IMG/VR virus record: IMGVR_UViG_3300043425_001539
Span: 1 to 64,000 of that record
Direction: 5' to 3' (one strand)
Length of the DNA: 64,000 nucleotides
The position numbers were made by a program, and so were the translations under genes. Below, one piece after another: positions 31,723 to 58,240 of the stretch. The notes under the pieces are model-generated. The model saw nothing but the letters and a program-made list of their open reading frames with translations. It was not told the DNA's origin and searched no databases. The number at the start of each line of letters is the position of its first letter. Position 1 is the stretch's first letter.

Positions 31723-33642
31723 TCATCCAATCTTTTCTATGTTTAAGTTGGAAAAACCGTTATTTTTAATAATATCCACCTTATAATCAAATATTTCCGT
31801 AGGTAATTGTGAGTGATTAATTACAAATATGTTTAAATTTAATTCTCTGCATGTTTTATGTAAAACTTTTAAAATGTGATATATCCCATCTGAGTCTATT
31901 GAAGAAAATATTTCATCTAAATAAATTAAGTTTAAACCTGCAAATTTAGTTTTCATTAGTCGTATTAAAGCAATTAAAACCGCAAAATCAACTTTTTTGC
32001 GTTCACCTGTGCTTAATTGTTCCGCTGAAACTTTAAATCCTAGATGTTGAATATCAACGTCAAATTCTTCATTAAAACTTACTCTATAGTCCATGTTTAA
32101 ATCATTTAATACTTTTTTGATCTCAACATTTAATACAGGTAAAATTCTTTTTAATGCTGATACTTTTACTCCTTTGTCTCCAAAGATGTCTTCTATAATT
32201 TTGTAAAAATTTGCCTTTTTTTCATCAACAGTTTTTCTTTGTATTGCTTCATTTTTTTTATTTGAATTGTCATTAATTATATTCTTTAATGATTGCGTTT
32301 GTTCATCAACTGCATGATTTTCTTTTAATAAATTAATTTCATTGGTATAAGAATATAATTGGGATGATGCATTTATTTTTTTATTATTTAATTCTGAATA
32401 CGCAGATTTAATTTTTTCTTTGCGTTCAGATAATTCTTTTATTTTTTCTCGAGTTTCCTCTATAATTTTTCTAGAACTTTCATCTCTTTTGATATATTCA
32501 TGCAATAAAAATTTGTGATGCTCGGTTGTTAAATCCGACTCGCAAGTGGGACATTTACCATTTTCATATAATCTTATTTTTTCAGTACATATGTGAATTT
32601 CCGTTTTATGACCATTTATGATATTTTCCCATTCTTTTAAAGTTGCTTCTACATCGTTATTCTTTTCTTTTATTTGTTTTAAATTTTCATCGGCATTCTT
32701 TATAAACTCATTTAGTTTTTGTATTTTCTCTAATAGGATAGTTTTCTTTTCTTCGCTTGCTTCTTTAATTTTTTGATTTAATAATTCAAGTTCATTTACT
32801 GATGCCGTTATATTGCGTTCTATCACCGAAATTTCTGTGTCTATCAAATCTATTTGTTCTTTCATTGTTTTGATTTGATACTTAACTTTCCATTTAATAC
32901 TTCCTAAAACCTCTAATCCAAACAACCTGTCTATAATCATTCGTTTATCGTGTACACCCATACTGATAAAACTCTTAAAATCATTAATGGACAAAGATAC
33001 CATATTATTAAATACATAGTACGGAACCCCTAAAATTTCGTCTTCTAAAAAATCTTGAACATTCTTTTTTCCTGCTTGGTCATATTCAATACCATTAACA
33101 TAAACCTTAAAAATACTTGGTGCAATTCCTCTTTCTATAACAACATGTGTACTTGAATTTTTTTCTACTTCTATTTTAACATATAAAGCATTATTAAACC
33201 TATTAGGTAATTCTTTTAATTTTTTGCCATCAACTTTTCCGTACAATCCAAATTTAATAACATCCGAAAGAGTAGAATTGTGTGATACAATATTATTTGC
33301 AAAAAATTCATGAACAGTATCAACTTCTATGTCATACAAATCATCTTTGTAATTTAATATATCGTTTGCAACTATTTCTTCTAATCCATGCTCTGTTTCT
33401 ATATAATCTCCTATTTTTAAATGTTTTACTTTAACCCATTCATTTTTCCAAAGTAAATGATCAGGTGAAGTTTTAATAAATTTTCCAGAAACTAATTTAA
33501 CACAATGAACTTCAGAATTTCTTGCTGTTATATCAATAGCTTTAATATCACGTTTCCCATATCGAGTTTTAACTTTAATACCTTCTATTTTTTCATTTTC
33601 AAAATGAATAAAATCGTATAAATCTTTTAGCGTGCAATTCAT
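31723..33642 (-). CDS. gp46/SbcC (Rad50-like) C-part preceded by a 122-aa split-intein C-fragment
   Basis: TSPDH (block B) and YDIEV..FFANNIVSHN|S; then zinc hook CPTC, LSTGE signature, YLDE, INH. Confidence 0.92.
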   Translation of the reverse strand: MNCTLKDLYDFIHFENEKIEGIKVKTRYGKRDIKAIDITARNSEVHCVKLVSGKFIKTSPDHLLWKNEWVKVKHLKIGDYIETEHGLEEIVANDILNYKDDLYDIEVDTVHEFFANNIVSHNSTLSDVIKFGLYGKVDGKKLKELPNRFNNALYVKIEVEKNSSTHVVIERGIAPSIFKVYVNGIEYDQAGKKNVQDFLEDEILGVPYYVFNNMVSLSINDFKSFISMGVHDKRMIIDRLFGLEVLGSIKWKVKYQIKTMKEQIDLIDTEISVIERNITASVNELELLNQKIKEASEEKKTILLEKIQKLNEFIKNADENLKQIKEKNNDVEATLKEWENIINGHKTEIHICTEKIRLYENGKCPTCESDLTTEHHKFLLHEYIKRDESSRKIIEETREKIKELSERKEKIKSAYSELNNKKINASSQLYSYTNEINLLKENHAVDEQTQSLKNIINDNSNKKNEAIQRKTVDEKKANFYKIIEDIFGDKGVKVSALKRILPVLNVEIKKVLNDLNMDYRVSFNEEFDVDIQHLGFKVSAEQLSTGERKKVDFAVLIALIRLMKTKFAGLNLIYLDEIFSSIDSDGIYHILKVLHKTCRELNLNIFVINHSQLPTEIFDYKVDIIKNNGFSNLNIEKIG

Positions 33643-33979
33643 AAATATTTTTTAAATTGTTTAAAAATTCATCAACATCGTCAGTATCCCAAACATATAA
33701 TAAAATAAAACCATTTTGTTCGGCTAATATTTTTTTACTATTATCATATAACATAGATTCTTCAGGAGTTTGATTGGAATAAAGTGATCGCCAAGAATCG
33801 TTATGTTTTTCTTTATTAAAATGAAATTTAGAACCTTGAAATTCTATTATAATTTTTTTAGACCTAATACAAAAATCGTAAAAAAATATTTTATTTTTTA
33901 ATTCTGCCCAAATATACCATTCTCTCTTGTCATTATATCCAAAAAAAATTTCATCATCAGAAATTCCGCTGTTTAACAA
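33599..33979 (-). pseudogene. N-terminally truncated Vsr/DUF559-like homing endonuclease between the gp46 halves
   Basis: FYDF..IIIEFQGSKFH..D..K..LAEQNGF....VWD matches the C-domain of 40420-41562; no DNA-binding part and no ATG. Confidence 0.65.
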
Positions 33980-34198
33980 TTAAACGGGTTCTCTATTTTT
34001 AAGAAATTTTTTAAACCTTTCTTCTTTATCTTTATCATCAAAGAAAATTTCTATATTAGTTTCTTTATCTAAACATTTACCTGCTCCATTACTTCCTAAA
34101 ACTATATAAAAATTTCCTTGGTTTTCATCAAATACTATTTGCTGTGCATTATTTCCATAACTACCAAAATTTTTCCAGGAAATGCTTTTAATTTTCAT
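33980..34198 (-). CDS. gp46/SbcC N-part (41 aa) plus a 31-aa split-intein N-fragment
   Basis: KNFGSYGN..GSNGAGK|CLDKETNIEI; Walker A is interrupted between K and S. Confidence 0.9.
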   Translation of the reverse strand: MKIKSISWKNFGSYGNNAQQIVFDENQGNFYIVLGSNGAGKCLDKETNIEIFFDDKDKEERFKKFLKNREPV

Positions 34199-34209
34199 AT
34201 TTAATATTT

Positions 34210-35316
34210 TTAGTTTTCATTACTTCGCTTTTCTTCCAATTCAAGAAGCGCATCGTAATATAATTTTTTACTTACTTTAATTAATTTTTCTTTGATTACA
34301 TCTGAATATTGTAAATTTTCTATATGTCTTTCGATTAAAAACGGCAAATTAATTTCACCCGTCTCAATATTTTCTGTGTTATTGCCATCTTCTATTCTTT
34401 GTTCTTCTTCAGTTACTATATTATGATTAATTTTTCTATAACCGCTAAATTTTTCTGTAAATGCTGCAAATGGGAATTTTAATGACCATTGCGGAGTTAC
34501 CATAATATCAATAAAATTATTTTTAAAAAGTCCTCTGAGGTCATCTAATGTTTGTTCAAGGAGCCATTCAAGTTTGTAACGCAAAAATTTTGGAGAATAA
34601 TCATTAATGAATTGTATTTCTTCATCATTTTCCAAATCATACAGCCAAATACTTTTAGTGTTTCCCGAATCTGAACGAGTAAGTTCATAAGGGCAACCAA
34701 GCATTCTTATGTTGTTTGTTTTTTGCGCGTAGTGAATATGCCCTGAGTAGACTTTTTTGAACGATTTAAAAATTTCGGCTTCGTTTCCTTCATCAATTTT
34801 TGTGAAACGATTAAAAGATAAACCGCGAATATCAGTATGGCAAAAGAGGATGTCTGATGCATTTTCAGGATTTTGGATTATTTCTTTAATATCTTCATGC
34901 TTTTCAACCCACGGCAAGAAAAACACTTTTTTCTTGCCAAACATCATATGCTCAGGTTTTTCAATTACGGTTATGTTATCAACATTACGAAATACTTTTA
35001 ATGAATTAATTTCATTTGAGTATTTCATAAAAATATCATGGTTACCTATAATCATATAGACCGGCATAATTTTTGCTATATCCTCAAAAATTGAAATACC
35101 TTTGTTTAATACATATAGGTTAATTGACTGCCGCGAATCAAATACGTCTCCACAATGTACAACCACATCTCCCGGTTTTCCTTCTTTTTGTAAAAGTGGA
35201 ATAAAAAAATTTTTAAAATAATCATCTATGATATCCATCCATTCTCGCGAATTTGAACGAACACCTAAATGCGTATCCGATATTAAAAAAATCCGTTTTA
35301 CGTCTTTTTTTATCAT
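34210..35316 (-). CDS. gp47/SbcD (Mre11-like) nuclease
   Basis: SDTHLG, GDVFD, GNHD, SGHIH motifs. Confidence 0.93.
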   Translation of the reverse strand: MIKKDVKRIFLISDTHLGVRSNSREWMDIIDDYFKNFFIPLLQKEGKPGDVVVHCGDVFDSRQSINLYVLNKGISIFEDIAKIMPVYMIIGNHDIFMKYSNEINSLKVFRNVDNITVIEKPEHMMFGKKKVFFLPWVEKHEDIKEIIQNPENASDILFCHTDIRGLSFNRFTKIDEGNEAEIFKSFKKVYSGHIHYAQKTNNIRMLGCPYELTRSDSGNTKSIWLYDLENDEEIQFINDYSPKFLRYKLEWLLEQTLDDLRGLFKNNFIDIMVTPQWSLKFPFAAFTEKFSGYRKINHNIVTEEEQRIEDGNNTENIETGEINLPFLIERHIENLQYSDVIKEKLIKVSKKLYYDALLELEEKRSNEN

Positions 35317-37077: not shown

Positions 37078-37407
37078 TTAGGACCAAGGATTATTAATAA
37101 CTTGATATTGCATTTCAGGTTTTTTACCTGACGTCAAACCTATTCTTTGTAAAAAAGCGCCTGGGCAATCTTCCGGATCAGCTGCATAATCCAAAAATCC
37201 TGAAAGCTCACTAATAGTGCCTACACCGTCTTTCATGTAAGGCCACACTTGAGACGGTGTAAAAGGACTATTTAGTTCTTCTTTGTCTGATAAGTTACTA
37301 AGAAGCATATATGTTAAATCAGTGTGTGATGGAAAGCTTTCCATCTCTTTATACACATTTAACAAATATTTAATAGGTAATTTGTTTTGATTAATCTTCA
37401 TTTTCAT
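37078..37407 (-). CDS. Hypothetical protein (likely start 37407 or 37401)
   Basis: ORF coupled to the end of UvsX part 3. Confidence 0.55.
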   Translation of the reverse strand: MKMKINQNKLPIKYLLNVYKEMESFPSHTDLTYMLLSNLSDKEELNSPFTPSQVWPYMKDGVGTISELSGFLDYAADPEDCPGAFLQRIGLTSGKKPEMQYQVINNPWS

Positions 37408-38140
37408 CTTCAAAAATATCTCCAATAATTTCGTCGTCTTCAATTTGATTAACGTCGCCAATATTTGGAAGCATAAACATTTTTTTGATAATTTTTTCGT
37501 CAAGCTCTTCTAATACTTCTTTAGTAATAACTCTTGAAGTAAATAAATCCTGTGGTTTAATTTCTTCGCACAAATGTCTGACTGCAATGGTACGTGCCGT
37601 TGGCTTATCTTCAAAATAAAAAACTGTTTCTGTTCCGTCTTCGTTAGTTTTGACGAATCTTGTTGACTCAATTATATCTTTTTTCTCATGTCCTTTTGCA
37701 TACGTTTTTTCAAATTCTTTTTGTGTAATTAGTTTACCTTTTTGAATCCCGCAATTTTCCCAATTTATGTATTCTTCTAATCCAACATAAGGATTCATTC
37801 CTTTATAAAAGGAAATATGGAATTTAATAGGTAAAGGACGAGCAAATCTATTTTTAGCTGGTTTTGAAGTTACGATAATTCCAGTTTTCATGGCAAAACC
37901 GTTAGAACCAACTGCTCCTTCTTTAAGGCCAGCTTTTGATAATTGAACTATGATTGATGCATTGTATATAGCTCCGCCGCCACCTGAAATTGTTTGTCCT
38001 GGAATAAAAGAACCGATTGAATTATGCATAATGACACCTTCTTTAGAAATATAATGGTGCTCATCTGCAACTTCAATATCATATACTGTGTTCAAGTTGC
38101 CTTGTTCTTTTTTAAGAAGTTTTAGTTTTTTCATATTCAT
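37391..38140 (-). CDS. uvsX: UvsX/RecA part 3: 38-40-aa split-intein C-fragment plus 209-aa C-extein
   Basis: VYDIEVADEHHYI..IMHN|SIGSFIPGQTISGGGGAIYNAS..KNRF. Confidence 0.9.
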   Translation of the reverse strand: MNMKKLKLLKKEQGNLNTVYDIEVADEHHYISKEGVIMHNSIGSFIPGQTISGGGGAIYNASIIVQLSKAGLKEGAVGSNGFAMKTGIIVTSKPAKNRFARPLPIKFHISFYKGMNPYVGLEEYINWENCGIQKGKLITQKEFEKTYAKGHEKKDIIESTRFVKTNEDGTETVFYFEDKPTARTIAVRHLCEEIKPQDLFTSRVITKEVLEELDEKIIKKMFMLPNIGDVNQIEDDEIIGDIFEDENED

Positions 38141-39149
38141 TTATTTTTAATTGTAATTCTTCATATGTTATGGAATTAGTTGCGCCTTTTGATAAATTTT
38201 CCACGAATGGAATAAATTCAAGATTTGCAATATGGGAAGCTATTAAAGGGTCTATACACATCTCAAAACAAGATCTGATTGACAAGCTATGATCTATGTG
38301 ATACATCATTTTTCCTCTTTTTATTTCCCAATTATTGCCAAATTTTGCGTTTCCATGGTTGATTAAAGTTTCTTCTGTTAATATTCTAACTAATTTTATA
38401 TATTCATTAAGAGTTAATATTTCTTGATTTATGAGTTTTTCAGATATAAATTTAACATCTTCAATGTCTATACCAAGTTTGGATGCCAACATTTTTCTTT
38501 TAAAAATGTCTACATGCATAGGATTACTTGTGTTATATTTTTGATTAAATGATGATAACCATTTTTCTTTAACATTTTTGTCTGACAGCGGATTTGGACC
38601 ACCGTATTTTTCTTTACATGTATTTTTTGCTTTTTCCTTAACAATGTCACTTTTTTGTGCTATTTCATTTCCGTACTTTATTTTCCAAGTTTTTGCTCTA
38701 GACTCTTTAAATCCTTCTATTTTAAAATTATGATTTACGCCGTATTTTTCTTGTAAGGTATTTTTTCGCTTCGTTTTAATTTCATTTTTTTCCGTCTCGC
38801 TAAGCATTGAATAAGTATTTGAATAAGATTCAGATCGTTTTCTTTTTATTTCTAAATCTTTAGCTTGATTAAATGCTCGACAAGAATGACTACAAAACAT
38901 TTTTTTCCCGCCGTCATTTATCAGAGTATTACATTCTTTACATATATTCATTTCTGTTAATTCATTAAGAATATACGTTATCCTAATTTTAATATCGGTG
39001 TCAGAATTACAAAAAGATGTATTTTCTATTATTAGATTATGTAAATCTTTTCTTTTATATAATTCTTTTTTAACATTTCCTAAATTAGAAGTATTTTTGT
39101 TTTTTTCTAATACAATTTTCCAATTATTTTCTGTAATGTGAAGTTTCAT
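38112..39149 (-). mobile_element. Free-standing HNH-like homing endonuclease between UvsX parts 2 and 3
   Basis: CKEC/CSHSC zinc motifs, T..EKYG repeats, C-terminal HIDH..NL..ENLSKG. Confidence 0.8.
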
Positions 39150-39184
39150 AAGTTTTTATTTATATATCTCCATGAAACTTCACA
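39137..39184 (-). promoter_or_regulatory. 13-bp hairpin sequestering the HEG AUG, with a late promoter in the loop
   Basis: TGTGAAGTTTCAT..GATATATAAATAAAAA..ATGAAACTTCACA. Confidence 0.8.
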
Positions 39185-39203
39185 AATCATACATTTAGTT
39201 TCT

Positions 39204-40409
39204 TTATTGAGTTTGCTGCAAAATAAAATCACCTTCATTTAATTCATCTGCAGTTTTCCAGGAAGTCTCTTTATTCGGATCTTCATCCACAAGAAATTTA
39301 TGTAAAGGAGAACACTCAATTTCAATATTGTCTTCAAAAAATAATTTAACTGTTCTTGTTTTATCATATTTAAAAGTGTTTAACACCTCTTTACCGCCGT
39401 AAACAGTCATAACGGTATCACCTATTTTAATTTCATTAAGTTGTTTAATTTCGCCATTACCCATCATAATTTCTGTATCGCCTAAGGCACAAGCATATGT
39501 GTGATTTGTGAATATAAACGGGATTTTAAATTCTGCAAGATCTGTAGTAATCACACGGAAAAGTGATCTTAGATCTTGTTGTTTTGTCATATCCTTTTTT
39601 TCACTTCCTGATGCTGCATCTGCTTTTTCTTTGGTTGTTGCAAGATTTCCTAAAGAATCAAGAACCAATAAAATTTTAGGTAATTCTGCTCCTTTATCTT
39701 TTGCTTTTTTAAGTTGGTCACAAAGATTAGAAACAAAATGTCGTACTTCAAGTGATGTACTTACAGGTTGATACCGAACTCCTTCAGGGTCTATTCCAAA
39801 GTTACGCATAGTAGTTTCATCAACCGCAGCTTCTGAGTCACAGTATATAATATGATATCCCATTTTTTGGGCTTCACGGCAAGCATTCAAGGTTAAGAAT
39901 GTTTTTCCTGTGTTATGTGAAGATATACCGTCGCCGGCCCAATACCTATGATTTTCATGAAGCACCTCCCAGTCATATACTTCTTCTGTTCTTGTTGCAG
40001 AACATTTTTTTACATTATAAAAGCCATCTTTAGTTAAAACAGAATCCTTTGTTGTTAAATCTTCTGCTTTTTTCCAGCCATTTAATGTTTCATAAAGATG
40101 ATCTTGTGAAGATTCGCATACATAATTATTTTCTAATTCTAATTTGTATATTTTTCTTGGTTTCTTAATATAAAAGTTTCCAATAGGTTGATAACCGTCT
40201 GGTGTATCAATAAAAATTGCCGAATCTTTTAAAGATACTAATTCTCCAGCTGTAATTTCTATTGAATTTTCTTCAGCATGTAAATTAAATCTCTGTATAA
40301 TTTCATTATCCGATAAATGATCAAAATTTTCTTTAGGATAACAAAATTTTAATTCTTCGCGTAAAATTTCAGGGTCATAAATTGCTTTTTCTGTTTCAAG
40401 ATTTTGCAT
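39204..40409 (-). CDS. uvsX: UvsX/RecA part 2: 166-aa IntC, 140-aa extein, 95-aa IntN of a second intein
   Basis: SQDH..VYDWEV..SSHN|TGKT..DSE..VLDSLGNL..FTNHTYA|CALGDT..CSPLHKF..LNEGDFI. Confidence 0.92.
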   Translation of the reverse strand: MQNLETEKAIYDPEILREELKFCYPKENFDHLSDNEIIQRFNLHAEENSIEITAGELVSLKDSAIFIDTPDGYQPIGNFYIKKPRKIYKLELENNYVCESSQDHLYETLNGWKKAEDLTTKDSVLTKDGFYNVKKCSATRTEEVYDWEVLHENHRYWAGDGISSHNTGKTFLTLNACREAQKMGYHIIYCDSEAAVDETTMRNFGIDPEGVRYQPVSTSLEVRHFVSNLCDQLKKAKDKGAELPKILLVLDSLGNLATTKEKADAASGSEKKDMTKQQDLRSLFRVITTDLAEFKIPFIFTNHTYACALGDTEIMMGNGEIKQLNEIKIGDTVMTVYGGKEVLNTFKYDKTRTVKLFFEDNIEIECSPLHKFLVDEDPNKETSWKTADELNEGDFILQQTQ

Positions 40410-40419
40410 ATAGTGTATT

Positions 40420-41562
40420 TTATTTTAAATTTATATTCAATAAGTTTTTGATAGTTTCTTGATTATTTCTTTGATAATCCCAAACTACAAAATATAAAAA
40501 TCCAGCTTCTTCTGCAATACGTTTTTTTTCTTTATCTTTTTGCAATGATTCTTCATAAGTATAAATAGGATTTTTCCAATTTTCTTTTGACTTGTTAGAA
40601 TCAGCGTGCCAAAAACTTCCGTGATATTCAATAATTATCTTTTTTTCAGGAATGACAAAGTCATAAAAATAAATCTTTTTATTTACGTTATCATATAAAA
40701 AATATTCATTTTTTCCGTATAAACAATTAAGATTTATAAAGTAATTTTTTTCTATTTCTTTAAAGAAAATATATGATTCAGTTGAAAAAAATTTGTTTCT
40801 TTTTATTCTTTTACAAATTATTTCTAATTTTTCATCATCTGGTTTATTTGCCCAATTCTTTTTAAATAAGTCTATTCTTTTTTCATATCTTTTTATACCT
40901 TCGTCATAACCGTATTTTTTTACATATGCTTGAAGAGATGTTGTAGTTTGTCTTTCTTTTAATGCATTTTTTGCATCTTCAAGTGTTAAACCGCGTTCCA
41001 AATAAAAACTTAACTGTCTATCAGAAACAGCTTTCCCAAGTTTTTTATACAAAGTATTTTTTATTTTACCTGCGCGTGAACATCTATTAAAAATTTTTTG
41101 TTTAGCCTCTTCTTGCGTTAGACCCTGATTTTTTACAAGCCAATCTGCATTTAAACCATTACCTTTTCTTTTGTTTATTTCTGCTTTTTCTTCTTTTGTT
41201 TTTTTGGAAAGCGTTGCTTGTATTTTTGCAGCAATCTCAGGCGTACAGGTTGATTGTCTTTTCTTAATTTTTTCAATTGCTTGAGCTTTACTCCATCCTC
41301 TGTCTATCCAATAATTAATATTTAATTGGGTTGCAGAAAAAAAACCAATCATTGATAAACAAATTCTGCTTGCCTGTTTTTTTTCGATCTGAACATAATT
41401 ATCAAGATAACGTTGATACATTTTCTCAAATTCGTTTGTGTCTGCATCATAATTAAAATTTGAAACAAGCTGTCTTACATACTTGATATAATCATCGTAA
41501 GACAGCTTGTTTTTAAAAATGCTCAACGGATTTTTACTCTTCGATTGTGTACCTTTCATCAA
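40420..41562 (-). mobile_element. Free-standing Vsr/DUF559-like homing endonuclease between UvsX parts 1 and 2
   Basis: Helical repeats (YW..RG.S..EA), then FYDF..IIIEYHGSFWHA..KD..K..IA...GF....VWD. Confidence 0.8.
40431..40457 (-). promoter_or_regulatory. Middle-type promoter AAACT-N15-AATATAA inside the last HEG codons, upstream of UvsX part 2
   Basis: Minus strand reads AAGAAACTATCAAAAACTTATTGAATATAA. Confidence 0.6.
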
Positions 41563-41818
41563 ATGTGCGGGTTTTCAGTATATATACTTTAACCTTTTCA
41601 TTTTTTGGCAAACATCCTGATTCACCCGCAAAACATATTGATCTTGAGTTTGGGATGCCTCCAAAGAGAGAGCCAGTTAATTGCGCATTTAACATAAAAT
41701 TGCCCGTAGGAATATATTCATCAATTTTAGAAAAAGTGTTGTGAGTGATGATCGATCCTTTAGGATTAATTTTTGACAGCGCTGAATCTAATTCAGAAAA
41801 AGAAAATGATTTAGCCAT
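41534..41818 (-). CDS. uvsX: UvsX/RecA part 1: 68-aa N-extein plus 26-aa split-intein N-fragment
   Basis: IPTGNFMLNAQLTGSLFGGIP..FAGESG|CLPKNEKVKV. Confidence 0.9.
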   Translation of the reverse strand: MAKSFSFSELDSALSKINPKGSIITHNTFSKIDEYIPTGNFMLNAQLTGSLFGGIPNSRSICFAGESGCLPKNEKVKVYILKTRTFDERYTIEE

Positions 41819-54566: not shown

Positions 54567-55646
54567 TCATCCTTCACAACTTACGCAATCTGGGTCAGTT
54601 GCTCTTGCTGCTATATCACCTCGTAATACACTTTCTGTCCTTGTATAATATAAAGTTTTAATACCTTGTCGCCAAGCTTCCATATGTACTTGGTTAATCC
54701 ATTTAGGTTCAGCGCTTGAAGGGAAGGCAAGATTTAAAGAGACAGATTGATCTATGTATTGTTGTCGTATCCCAGCTTGCTTGACTAAATCCAATTGATT
54801 AATTTCTTTAAATGTCTTAAATACATCTTTAACCATATTGCATCTGTTTTGCTCATCTTGAGTTAATTCGTTAAAATTACACACCTTTCCGTCAAGAAAA
54901 CACCAGGAATCCAAAAAGTCCAGTCCTTGAATAGAACCGCCGTCCACAAAAATTTGATCCCAAACTTCTTTGGTATTTTTACCAATTCCTTCAAGTACTT
55001 TTTCAAGTTCGTGGTTTTTTCTAATAAAAGTTCCTTTTGCAGTTTGCTCAGTAAAAACATTGGCAGCCCAAGGCTCAATACCTGAAGATACGTTTCCACT
55101 TAATTTGGAATTTGACACAGTTGGAGCAACAGCACGTAAATGTGTATTTCTAAATCCTGTGTCTTTGCACCATAAAGGTTCACCGTATTCGTTTGCCAAA
55201 TCTCTACTTGCTCTTTCGCTTTCAATTTTTAATTGTGAAAAAATTCTGCGAGTTTCAAACTGAGCCTGTAGGCCTTCAAAAGGAATTCCGTTTTGTTGCA
55301 AATATGTATGCCATCCAAGTACGCCTAATCCTAATGCTCTTCCTTTTTCAGCTGATCTTACAGCATTTTCAAAGCCTTTCATATTTTTGGCTTTTTGTAT
55401 AAATTCCTCTAAAACTCCATCCAAAAACCAAGTAGCTGTATACATCAAATCCGTATCTTTCCACTCGTTGTATTTAGCAAGATTGAGAGAACTTAAACAA
55501 CAAACAAAAGAGTGCGATTCATCAGTGAAAAGCACAATTTCACTACAATTATGGACTAATATATCATTAGCATAAAAGTTTTTATTTTCAGCAACTGTTA
55601 TATCATAAACCGGTTCACGTTTTGTTGTTTTTTTAATTTTTAACAT
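54567..55646 (-). CDS. nrdA: Ribonucleotide reductase alpha C-part preceded by a 33-aa split-intein C-fragment
   Basis: VYDITV..NFYANDILVHN|CSEI..CCLSSLNL, APT, DQSVS.NL, KTLYY, CVSCEG. Confidence 0.93.
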   Translation of the reverse strand: MLKIKKTTKREPVYDITVAENKNFYANDILVHNCSEIVLFTDESHSFVCCLSSLNLAKYNEWKDTDLMYTATWFLDGVLEEFIQKAKNMKGFENAVRSAEKGRALGLGVLGWHTYLQQNGIPFEGLQAQFETRRIFSQLKIESERASRDLANEYGEPLWCKDTGFRNTHLRAVAPTVSNSKLSGNVSSGIEPWAANVFTEQTAKGTFIRKNHELEKVLEGIGKNTKEVWDQIFVDGGSIQGLDFLDSWCFLDGKVCNFNELTQDEQNRCNMVKDVFKTFKEINQLDLVKQAGIRQQYIDQSVSLNLAFPSSAEPKWINQVHMEAWRQGIKTLYYTRTESVLRGDIAARATDPDCVSCEG

Positions 55647-57055
55647 GTTTCAACTTTATTTTTTATTTTTATAAATTCAAATTGATCTAAATGAGTTTCT
55701 AAATTTTCTTTTAATTTTTGTGAAAATCTAGAAGAATTTGAATTTTCTTCAATTATCCTAGATTCATTTATATTATACTTTATCTCTGCAATACATTTAT
55801 CGTTTATTATTAAATAAAACATTACTTCACCCCAGTCTGGTTCAACTGTATAAAAGAACAAACCGTTACTAATAAAATAGCTTTTGGTTGGCAAATTCTT
55901 TATTATTTCATTTCTAGTAAGTCCTATAGAAATTCCCTTATTAGGTTCTATATTTTCCATTTCATGTGTTTTTTGATATATTTCCATTTCTTTCATTTTT
56001 TTAAAGTCTTTTATTGATAAGCCTTCTATGTTTGTTAGAAAAATATAATTATGATACTTTGCAGAAAACATAACACAATCTTGTATTTTTTCAAAATTTG
56101 ATTCATCTCTAATATATCCTTTTAATTCTATTAAATATTCTTCGTTATCAATATTAATAATAAAATCTGGCGTATATAATTTAGAGCCAATGCAAATAGT
56201 TACATTTTCATAAGACCAACTTTCTAATATATTTTCATTTGGTTTAATTATTTTTTCTATAAACTCAGATTCTAAAGAAGATCTAGTAATAAAAGGTTCT
56301 GTATTAAGGCATTTTTTAAAATCTGCGTTGTTAAATTCTGTTCTTTTAAATATTGGATTACCCATTGAATTTGAACCCATTATTGAATGATATGTCCCTA
56401 TTATAGAATTTATAATTTTATATGCCTCATCTAAATTACTGTCGGTTAAGTTTTTTAAGATATCTTTATCATAATATTTTTTATAAGCTTCTTTATTCCA
56501 AAAGTTTTGTATTTTAGATAATTTATATTCATCGCTATTAACTATCTTTCGTCGAAACTGCGAATAAATTTTATCTACATTTTCATTGGAGACGCCATCC
56601 AAGAAATATCCTTTATTTGATAAAACCAATCTTTTCCAATCTGTAGTATTAAATTCTTTATCGTAAGATTTTCGTTTATCTGTCCAATTATCCTTCTTAT
56701 TTTTTAAATTAGGTCTACCTTTAAGTTTTTTAGAGTGATCTGGTCTTCTTTTACCTCTAAATGAATGTCCCCTATTATAATTAGCATCTTTTACATCATG
56801 TCTAAATGTTATATTATCAAAAATTTTGTATTTGTTATCATCAACTTCAGATTTACAAACTTTTAAGAAATCATCTAATGTTAAGATTTTATTTTTTATA
56901 ATATACTTTAGTACATAAAAATATTTATCTTTATAGACTTTCTTACAAATATGTATAATACTTGAATCTATTAAATCTTCAATTTTTTCAATATTTTTTT
57001 TGATAGTTAATACAGATAGTTTTTTATACCCTTGTAATACTTCTAAAGTGTTCAT
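55640..57055 (-). mobile_element. Free-standing PD-(D/E)xK homing endonuclease between the nrdA halves (likely ATG at 57055)
   Basis: GKRRPDHSKKLKG (NUMOD-like); RSSLE..WSYE..YTPDF..LIELKG. Confidence 0.75.
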
Positions 57056-57104
57056 GACCAATATAAATTTTATTTATGTTATATATTCAAGTCATGAACA
57101 CTTT
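57045..57104 (-). promoter_or_regulatory. 14-bp hairpin sequestering the HEG AUG, with a late-like promoter in the loop
   Basis: AAAGTGTTCATGAC..GAATATATAAC..GTCATGAACACTTT. Confidence 0.8.
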
Positions 57105-57109
57105 TTTAC

Positions 57110-58240
57110 TTAATTTGTAATTAAAATGTCATCTTCCAATAAATCTTTTGCCTCTACCCAACCTCTTTGTGTAAATAATTTATGATTAGCTGTGCATTTT
57201 ATTGTTTTATTATTATCTAAATCTTCAATTTCATATACTTCAGCTGAATCATCAGTCATACCAAAATCGGTTATTAATTTCCATTCATTTATGTTAGTAT
57301 CAATATTACGTGATAGCGTATAAATTTGATCTTCTAATTTAAGTATTTCACCAATTTCATCTATTCTTACTTTATGAATTTCATCACTTATTTTAATATC
57401 AATTATCGTATCACCTGTCACACAAATATTAGTCATAAATACTTTTAGACCGTTTTTCTTATATGATTCGGGGTTTTGTTTATTGACATTGCCTTTAAAC
57501 ATAATATAAGGTTCACCGGTCGCTTTTCTTTTTTGCAAAAGTTTGCCCCATTTACGGCGTGCTTCGGTATCACCATCTAATAATTTGCGCATAAATTTAT
57601 CACCAACAACTGCGCATTGATGCATATTTAATGATTGGCGATTAACATCACCTTTAGGTTCTCGTGTTTCCAACCAATCTTCAAAATCTTTATGCTCAAT
57701 ATTAATATTTGTACTTGCTGCGCCTCTTCTTACAGCACCTTGATTGGTTGCAAGAATTGTTGAATCATAAATTTTGCAAAAAGGAACCACTCCATCTGAT
57801 GTTCCATTACCCGTTATTTTTGATCCAGCAGGTCTGATTTGATTAATACCAATACCTACTCCACCTCCATGTTTTGCAAGCAACATTAGTTCCAAATTTT
57901 TAGAACCTATTTCATAAATACTATCGCCAACATCAATCCCAAAACAACTAATAGGTAATCCTCTATCTGTTCCCATATTTGACAAAACTGGTGATGCCAA
58001 GCCTAGCCAGCCTTTCCAAATATAATCAAAAAATTTAGTAGCAAGGTGTGGCTTTCCTAATCTTTTAGCAACAGTGGTAGAAACCCGCCAATAAGCATCT
58101 TTAGGTTTTTCTCCCGCTAAAAGATATCCTTTGGATATTGTGTTAACATAAATTTCTGTTGCGCCCCAATCAGGAATATCAACTCCAAGTTCCCAGCCCA
58201 ACATATCTAATAATTCTTGTACTTTTTCGTTATTCATCAT
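57110..58240 (-). CDS. nrdA: Ribonucleotide reductase alpha N-part (272 aa) plus a 104-aa split-intein N-fragment
   Basis: ASPVLSN, LPISCF, GGGVG, RRGA, TGEPY, MTNI|CVTGDT..CTANH..WVEAKDL...D. Confidence 0.93.
   Translation of the reverse strand: MMNNEKVQELLDMLGWELGVDIPDWGATEIYVNTISKGYLLAGEKPKDAYWRVSTTVAKRLGKPHLATKFFDYIWKGWLGLASPVLSNMGTDRGLPISCFGIDVGDSIYEIGSKNLELMLLAKHGGGVGIGINQIRPAGSKITGNGTSDGVVPFCKIYDSTILATNQGAVRRGAASTNINIEHKDFEDWLETREPKGDVNRQSLNMHQCAVVGDKFMRKLLDGDTEARRKWGKLLQKRKATGEPYIMFKGNVNKQNPESYKKNGLKVFMTNICVTGDTIIDIKISDEIHKVRIDEIGEILKLEDQIYTLSRNIDTNINEWKLITDFGMTDDSAEVYEIEDLDNNKTIKCTANHKLFTQRGWVEAKDLLEDDILITN

Follow-up and report, generated by a model that had tools for sequence, protein, structure and literature searches.

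Evidence for an atypically split class-1 intein in the Walker A motif of a phage gp46/SbcC gene

The window analysed here is the whole 64,000-nt stretch covering positions 1 to 64,000 of the IMG/VR virus record IMGVR_UViG_3300043425_001539. In this window, which comes from a freshwater T4-like phage, the gene for gp46/SbcC is divided between two open reading frames (ORFs), and our results support the presence of a class-1 intein (Cys1, Ser+1), atypically split, in the Walker A motif of the encoded ATPase. Very probably we are dealing with a fractured gene: a split mini-intein occupies Walker A, the remnant of an endonuclease gene lies in the loop between strand β2 and helix α1 of the intein, and the two protein pieces are rejoined by trans-splicing.

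All the elements of the locus lie on the (-) strand. The N-piece ORF (33980-34198, 72 aa) consists of a 41-aa N-extein (34076-34198), whose end is the first half of Walker A (GSNGAGK), and of a 31-aa N-terminal intein fragment (IntN, 33983-34075; CLDKET...NREPV), followed by the TAA stop (33980-33982) which terminates the N-piece and makes the intein a split one. IntN comprises Cys1, strands β1-β2 (CLDKETNIEIFF) and an amphipathic tail helix. The C-piece ORF (31723-33642, 639 aa) begins with the 122-aa C-terminal fragment (IntC, 33277-33642), which carries helix α1 (TLKDLYDFI), block B (TSPDH), block F (DLYDIEV) and block G (VSHN), and continues from Ser+1 into a 517-aa C-extein (31723-33276, stop codon 31723-31725 included), where the second half of Walker A (STLSD), the zinc-hook CPTC and Walker B are found. 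The predicted spliced gp46 is thus 41 + 517 = 558 aa long. These boundaries were proposed in a first-pass annotation made from the letters of the sequence; every coordinate and motif it listed is present, the assignment of blocks B, F and G to the C-piece and the 558-aa product included. Its picture of a two-ORF locus is right as to the two gp46 pieces, and overlooked a third ORF between them (33599-33979), a putative Vsr-like/EDxHD homing-endonuclease remnant of 126 codons from a TTG, which is in frame directly after the TAA and contains the nuclease domain only. Directly upstream is the gene for gp47, the Mre11/SbcD-like nuclease that is the partner of gp46 (34210-35316; Pfam Metallophos, E 6.5e-12). 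The gene order gp47, N-piece, C-piece is the same in relatives, and the layout of N-piece, optional endonuclease and C-piece recurs in the relatives L001, L003 and L005 and in dozens of IMG/VR loci.

According to the mechanism that we propose, two polypeptides would be produced, one made of the 41-aa extein and the 31-aa IntN, the other of the 122-aa IntC and the 517-aa extein. IntN (β1-β2 plus the amphipathic helix) would dock on IntC and complete the HINT fold; Cys1 would then form the thioester, Ser+1 would attack it and Asn122 would cyclise; the released gp46 would measure 558 aa and have an unbroken P-loop, GSNGAGKST. In this phage the element would be past its mobile phase, and gp46 would now be reliant on trans-splicing.

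The position of the insertion was established with the SbcC profile phrog_77. Residues 1-41 of the N-piece match profile positions 296-333, and residues 123-636 of the C-piece match positions 334-955 (E 7.7e-64). Since the two extein halves abut at positions 333/334, the 31 + 122 intein residues constitute a precise insertion, which separates Lys from Ser in the P-loop of Walker A (GK/ST). The Pfam matches of the exteins are weaker: those of the N-extein to the N-terminal parts of AAA_15, AAA_27, AAA_23 and SMC_N are all below the cut-off, and those of the C-extein to SbcC_Walker_B and Rad50_zn_hook are both weak. In a close relative (P0039, 76% identical) the allele lacks the intein and has the sequence GSNGAGK-STISDVIKFGLYG, the junction expected after splicing. 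We also noted, in the wastewater metagenome run X4, a 541-bp contig from a diverged relative that joins position 33280 to 34143, skipping 862 nt; linking the gp46 N-terminus to the end of the intein, it may represent an intein-less allele.

The insertion has the layout of a class-1 intein, GK/C...HN/S, inside Walker A. Compared with solved inteins by phmmer, the window IntC matches Pho RadA (E 2.4e-4), NrdJ-1 (2.6e-3) and Aes123 PolB1 (2.9e-3), in alignments that bring blocks B, F and G into register; the family profile gives stronger matches, to gp41-1 (2.7e-14), NrdJ-1 (7e-12) and VidaL (1.1e-11). The block B His (H62), the block F Asp (D104), the terminal His-Asn (H121, N122) and the +1 Ser (S123) are invariant in 30 of 30 family members, down to 35% identity, and all IntN pieces of the family begin with Cys. 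The AlphaFold2 (AF2) model of L044, a relative in which the intein is contiguous, adopts the intein (HINT) fold with a pLDDT of 94.6. In a Foldseek search with this model, VidaL was the best match (TM 0.89, E 2.7e-11), followed by NrdJ-1 and gp41-1, and the top 50 matches were all inteins, BIL or hedgehog Hint domains. Finally, the model of the window's own IntN-IntC complex reached an ipSAE of 0.74, against 0.00 for the best control; the same mark is attained by 51 of 78 solved complexes and by 2 of 108 mismatched pairs. The model supports an association of the predicted fragments. Together, the phrog_77 junction, the invariant residues, the fold and the complex model bear out the initial proposal of an atypically split intein in the gp46/SbcC Walker A motif.

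Some observations speak against this reading. The Pfam Hint-family matches of the window IntC taken by itself are below the curated cut-offs; the fold was predicted for the contiguous relative and not for the window's own pieces; and part of the complex score may stem from solved split inteins that the model has memorised. The Ka/Ks comparison with L001, the closest relative, is uninformative on purifying selection, dS being saturated (pS 0.58-1.0), and the comparison with L001 given below uses contrasts of identity. Trans-splicing itself is what we infer from the arrangement of the locus, and it is a structural model that brings the fragments together.

A first rival reading is that gp46 is a broken gene, either a pseudogene in pieces or the host of an inactive intein, whose fragments stay apart. 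The visible decay of the adjoining endonuclease would be in keeping with such a state. However, both pieces are intact ORFs in ~45 diverged loci, Cys1, the block B His, the block F Asp, the His-Asn pair and Ser+1 are kept down to the most distant members, the C-extein retains Walker B and the zinc hook, and the partner gp47 is intact. Genes 46 and 47 are required for normal T4 growth. We regard a broken gp46 as very unlikely. Alternatively, the pieces could be held together non-covalently, with the intein halves serving as an interaction module and no splicing taking place, in the manner of the split NrdA reported for phage Aeh1. There is a precedent in one report, by its title, of a fragmented ribonucleotide reductase assembled through interaction domains derived from a mobile element (PMC3045599), and the predicted IntN-IntC interface is large. 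Yet the break in gp46 falls inside the P-loop (GK/ST), so that without excision 153 foreign residues would remain in the ATP-binding site, and all the residues of the splicing chemistry are invariant, which is more than mere binding would need. This second explanation seems to us quite improbable, and reconstitution of gp46 by trans-splicing is the reading that we retain.

It is the TAA at 33980-33982 that makes the intein a split one. The annotation itself had named an error at this codon, revealed by homologs, as one outcome that would overturn its proposal. What we found is the opposite: the locus is identical, with zero differences, in three contigs of 2.5 kb, 47 kb and 21 kb, each belonging to a different run and study of freshwater metagenomes (2021 and 2025), one of which, it must be said, may be the window's own source. 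The stop is real, because three independent assemblies carry the same sequence. In the closest relatives the N-pieces are 69-74 aa long and stop within a few codons of the equivalent place, and both the start Met of IntC and the stop of the N-piece are kept in relatives. A sequencing or assembly error at the TAA in a truly contiguous intein, perhaps with an embedded endonuclease, would find some backing in the contiguous inteins that exist in the same family and at the same site (phages L004, L013, L041, L044 and L078). Against it stand the three concordant runs and the stops of the nearest relatives, as well as the reading frames: the remnant ORF does not share its frame with IntC (337 nt from 33979 to 33642), and reading through the TAA would therefore yield no contiguous intein. 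Read-through as a route to such an intein was discarded for the same reason, and an error at the stop is, in our judgement, extremely unlikely. An explanation at the RNA level, namely a group I or group II intron, was likewise ruled out, no Rfam family being found in the 30-60 kb region.

Where exactly is the intein split? In the L044 model, a helix, a loop and a short strand separate strand β2 from the canonical helix α1 (H46-56), and the split forms end their IntN in the loop between the extra helix and α1. Helix α1, downstream of this loop, sits on the IntC piece, where the sequence also places block B. Moreover, the start of VidaL IntC (IEEKKVTVQELRELY) aligns with the start of the IntC of the gp46 family, which places the split at S1 (after β2 and before α1) and not at S2. 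The S1 split is that of VidaL and PolB16, whereas AceL-TerL is split at S2, after α1 (PMC13014065). As in the S1 inteins, the window intein combines a short IntN (31 aa, within the 15-37 aa of this type) with block B in IntC, and departs from them in the helix appended to IntN; the presence of α1 on IntC sets it apart from the S2 type. The assignment to the AceL-TerL type made at first has to be replaced by a VidaL-type split.

The IntN consists of a ~13-aa core and a conserved amphipathic helix of ~18 aa. Among ~30 aligned IntN sequences, the core follows the pattern C-[LV]-x3-T-x-[IL]-x-[IV] and the tail the pattern F-x-x-F-[LI]-K, and the hydrophobic face of the tail helix (N-piece residues F62, F65 and L66) is kept across the family. 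This additional helix is peculiar to the family, and its contiguous members have it too. In the complex model, N-piece residues 39-55, 58-59, 61-63, 65-66 and 69 lie against IntC. Since the tail helix is conserved and predicted to dock on IntC, trimming IntN to a minimum, as had been suggested, may lower the affinity of the two halves.

The third ORF of the locus can be understood by comparison with L001, where a 307-aa endonuclease occupies the same position. The remnant is 69% identical to residues 195-305 of this protein. DNA homology between the two phages extends up to 33998 and resumes from 33962, with 35 nt in the window in place of 657 nt in L001 (~620 bp lost). As a consequence, the window copy has no spacer, no start codon (no ATG) and none of the ~190 N-terminal codons; in addition, a 1-nt difference makes the remnant run past the former stop. 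A full-length paralog of 380 aa is encoded in the same window at 40420-41562. The members of this endonuclease family share N-terminal W-x-x-KG-x-S-x-EEA repeats, which both the L001 protein and the paralog possess. The motifs YDF, IIE[FY]xG and H mark their C-terminal core, and the remnant retains YDF, IIEFxG and H (four aligned homologs). The similarity to Vsr/DUF559 is weak and everywhere sub-threshold (DUF559 3.2e-3; Vsr Pfam match of the paralog 5.2e-3; 1vsr E 0.77), as are the matches of the remnant to phrog_22677 and phrog_559 weak. The deleted repeat region was presumably the DNA-binding part. With this DNA-binding two-thirds and the start codon lost, the window endonuclease is most likely a dead remnant, and the locus, to judge from its sequence, is probably a fractured-gene arrangement with a decaying endonuclease.

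Roughly half of the gp46-intein loci have a full endonuclease ORF (245-430 aa), which is missing from the others. One locus without it, L003:2867-3000, has a 134-nt spacer that keeps a 20-codon ORF, MLKESQTTFSLDKCIKFINK; its product is similar to a central stretch of the endonuclease of L001, SERQSTFSLQSCIEKYG, and the ORF would thus be a smaller remnant of the same gene. As for the translation of IntC, the absence of a Shine-Dalgarno sequence in front of it is uninformative, because this phage hardly uses such sequences: a Shine-Dalgarno-like core precedes only 5 of the 123 long ORFs of the genome (G000).

The window locus is not a one-off. Our census, built on IntC loci (the 72-aa N-piece as query gave only 6 clusters, owing to a word-index limit), yielded 33 protein clusters and 80 IMG/VR loci; ~45 of the loci are SbcC/gp46 Walker A inteins sharing the site and the split position; five relatives are contiguous, namely the phages listed above in connection with the stop codon. 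Across the family IntN measures 21-40 aa (21 aa in L027) and the gap to IntC 19-1353 nt. In one of the contiguous loci (L004:3001-5307) the SbcC gene needs TAG to be read as Gln; the single TAG falls within the coiled coil, at a distance from the intein. The phage behind this contig may have recoded TAG, or the gene may have acquired a nonsense mutation.

In the tree of the IntC region the window pairs with L001 (support 100/99), and loci with the endonuclease, loci without it and contiguous inteins are intermingled. The well-supported branches require at least 8 changes of the endonuclease-bearing state and at least 2 of the contiguous state. Between the window and L001, amino acid identity is 80% for the intein and 69% for the endonuclease remnant, compared with 57-66% for the exteins; this greater likeness of intein and endonuclease fits a mobile unit. 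Since the element can pass from one lineage to another by homing, the tree does not show whether split inteins became contiguous or the reverse. L044 and L041, both contiguous, fall within groups of split forms and contain an internal Met-Lys-Lys exactly where split relatives begin IntC, directly after, or five residues past, the end of the IntN of these relatives. This fits a re-fusion and, equally, a pre-existing Met that made splitting viable.

We infer that the endonuclease caused the split of the gp46 intein, which persists while the endonuclease decays. A bolder proposal, which we put forward only tentatively and hold to be rather doubtful, is that the family records a full and partly reversible life cycle. 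A homing endonuclease gene would enter the β2-α1 loop of a mini-intein, splitting it; the endonuclease would then decay, as in the window, or disappear, as in L003, L012 and L027; and in some lineages the halves would fuse back to a contiguous intein. If this were true, natural intein splitting would not be one-way, and it would be the conserved IntN tail helix that allows an intein to be split so early.

Among the known systems, the best structural match is VidaL, an atypically split intein with a 16-aa IntN (structure PDB 6vgv). The gp46 family shares with it the S1 split, a predicted dependence on cysteine, an origin in metagenomes of T4-like phages and a P-loop ATPase as host. The two differ in that the host of VidaL is of the UvsX or helicase type, in sequence (~22% identity) and in the +1 residue, which is Ser in the gp46 intein; the IntN of 31 aa is longer than that of VidaL because the amphipathic helix follows the ~13-aa core. 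AceL-TerL, GOS-TerL and Cat are comparable in the length of IntN (25-37 aa against 31 aa) and are also natural, cysteine-dependent and derived from phage metagenomes, but they are split at S2 after α1 (PMC13014065) and interrupt the large terminase. At the sequence level the similarity is weak (CatC, E 0.12 with a single sequence and 6.8e-11 by profile).

The arrangement of the locus recalls the fractured genes described by Dassa and co-workers in 2009 (PMC2677866), in which a free-standing endonuclease (GIY-YIG or Vsr-like) lies between the halves of split inteins such as gp41-1, gp41-8, NrdJ-1, IMPDH-1 and NrdA-2. Common to both are the split intein and the location in a phage gene of DNA metabolism, and the ORF between the gp46 intein halves appears to be of the same Vsr-like family. 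Nearly all of the earlier cases, with a single exception, are canonically split (IntN ~100 aa), and the gp46 endonuclease differs in being truncated. SbcC/gp46 is not among the eight host enzymes of that study, where an SbcD-like gene is fractured without an intein (PMC2677866). As to the endonuclease, the known counterparts are I-Bth0305I and the EDxHD (Vsr-like) homing endonucleases (PMC3239194). The remnant has nuclease-core motifs in common with its own full-length relatives and a weak Vsr/DUF559 similarity, and it differs in being the catalytic third only, with the N-terminal repeats deleted.

According to the annotation, inteins with a very short IntN are not known from Rad50/SbcC hosts. 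Consistent with this, we found no SbcC/gp46/Rad50 intein in the full-text literature searched, an earlier mention in the original VidaL or GOS-TerL papers being possible, and no related gp46 intein in 50,697 deposited phage genomes, where the four matches are in TerL or UvsX-like genes; on the other hand, the metagenomic loci of our census do carry such inteins. The cyanophages S-T4 and ACG-2014f, suggested as carriers by tblastn with the C-piece, were rejected: their translation reads GK/ST, without an intein, and the small upstream ORFs are unrelated. Salicola phage SCTP-2, which has the best IntC match among the deposited phages, was also set aside as a gp46 intein, the match being a UvsX-like protein with two contiguous inteins. 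The gp46 split intein is a widespread and apparently undescribed addition to a known and useful class.

Split inteins with a short IntN are in demand, since peptide synthesis suffices to produce their N-piece, and only AceL-TerL, GOS-TerL, VidaL and PolB16 are named as natural examples (PMC13014065). The ~45 loci add a set of natural variants from a new host site, with an IntN of 21-40 aa, Cys1 and Ser+1, split and contiguous forms side by side and a conserved helix predicted to dock; as such, the gp46 family is a comparative set on what lets an early split work. From the point of view of phage biology, this would be a core ATPase of recombination that acquires its P-loop only through protein splicing. 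The locus also displays a homing endonuclease in mid-decay while the split persists, in a genome in which UvsX and NrdA are fractured as well.

The UvsX/RecA-like gene (37391-41818, (-)) is in three pieces with two split inteins. Its N-piece (41534-41818, (-)) ends with FAGESG/C and a 26-aa IntN, which is an atypical split inside Walker A. It is followed by the full-length Vsr-like endonuclease mentioned above (40420-41562, (-)) and by the middle piece (39204-40409, (-)), which starts with an IntC ending in SSHN/TGKT and terminates in a canonical IntN from NHTYA/CALGD. A DUF7487 ORF, a possible second endonuclease, comes next (38112-39149, (-)), and the third piece (37391-38140, (-)) carries an IntC ending in IMHN/SIGS. 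The first of these inteins is a close relative of VidaL (6vgv, E 4.2e-13), much closer to it than the gp46 intein is. In Salicola phage SCTP-2, contiguous inteins are found at seemingly the same two UvsX sites (FAG[ED]SG/C and after NHTYA).

NrdA (54567-58240, (-)) is fractured by a canonically split intein and resembles the NrdA loci of Dassa 2009. The N-piece (57110-58240, (-)) ends with MTNI/CVTGDT and an IntN of ~90 aa, and the C-piece (54567-55646, (-)) has a 33-aa IntC ending in VHN/CSEIV; between them, a 473-aa ORF without a Pfam match (55640-57061, (-)) is likely an endonuclease. Outside the window, G000:C1:76347-76592 (-) gave a weak tblastn match to the gp46 IntC (E 0.002, 26% over 88 aa, the C-terminal block region included) and may be a further intein of the same genome. 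The whole genome G000 has 238,475 bp and a GC content of 31.9%. In the relative L005/L006, a 344-kb contig, the neighbouring genes encode a Por_Secre_tail domain and two-component regulators; these neighbours and the sparse Shine-Dalgarno sequences hint at a Bacteroidota-type host or translation style.

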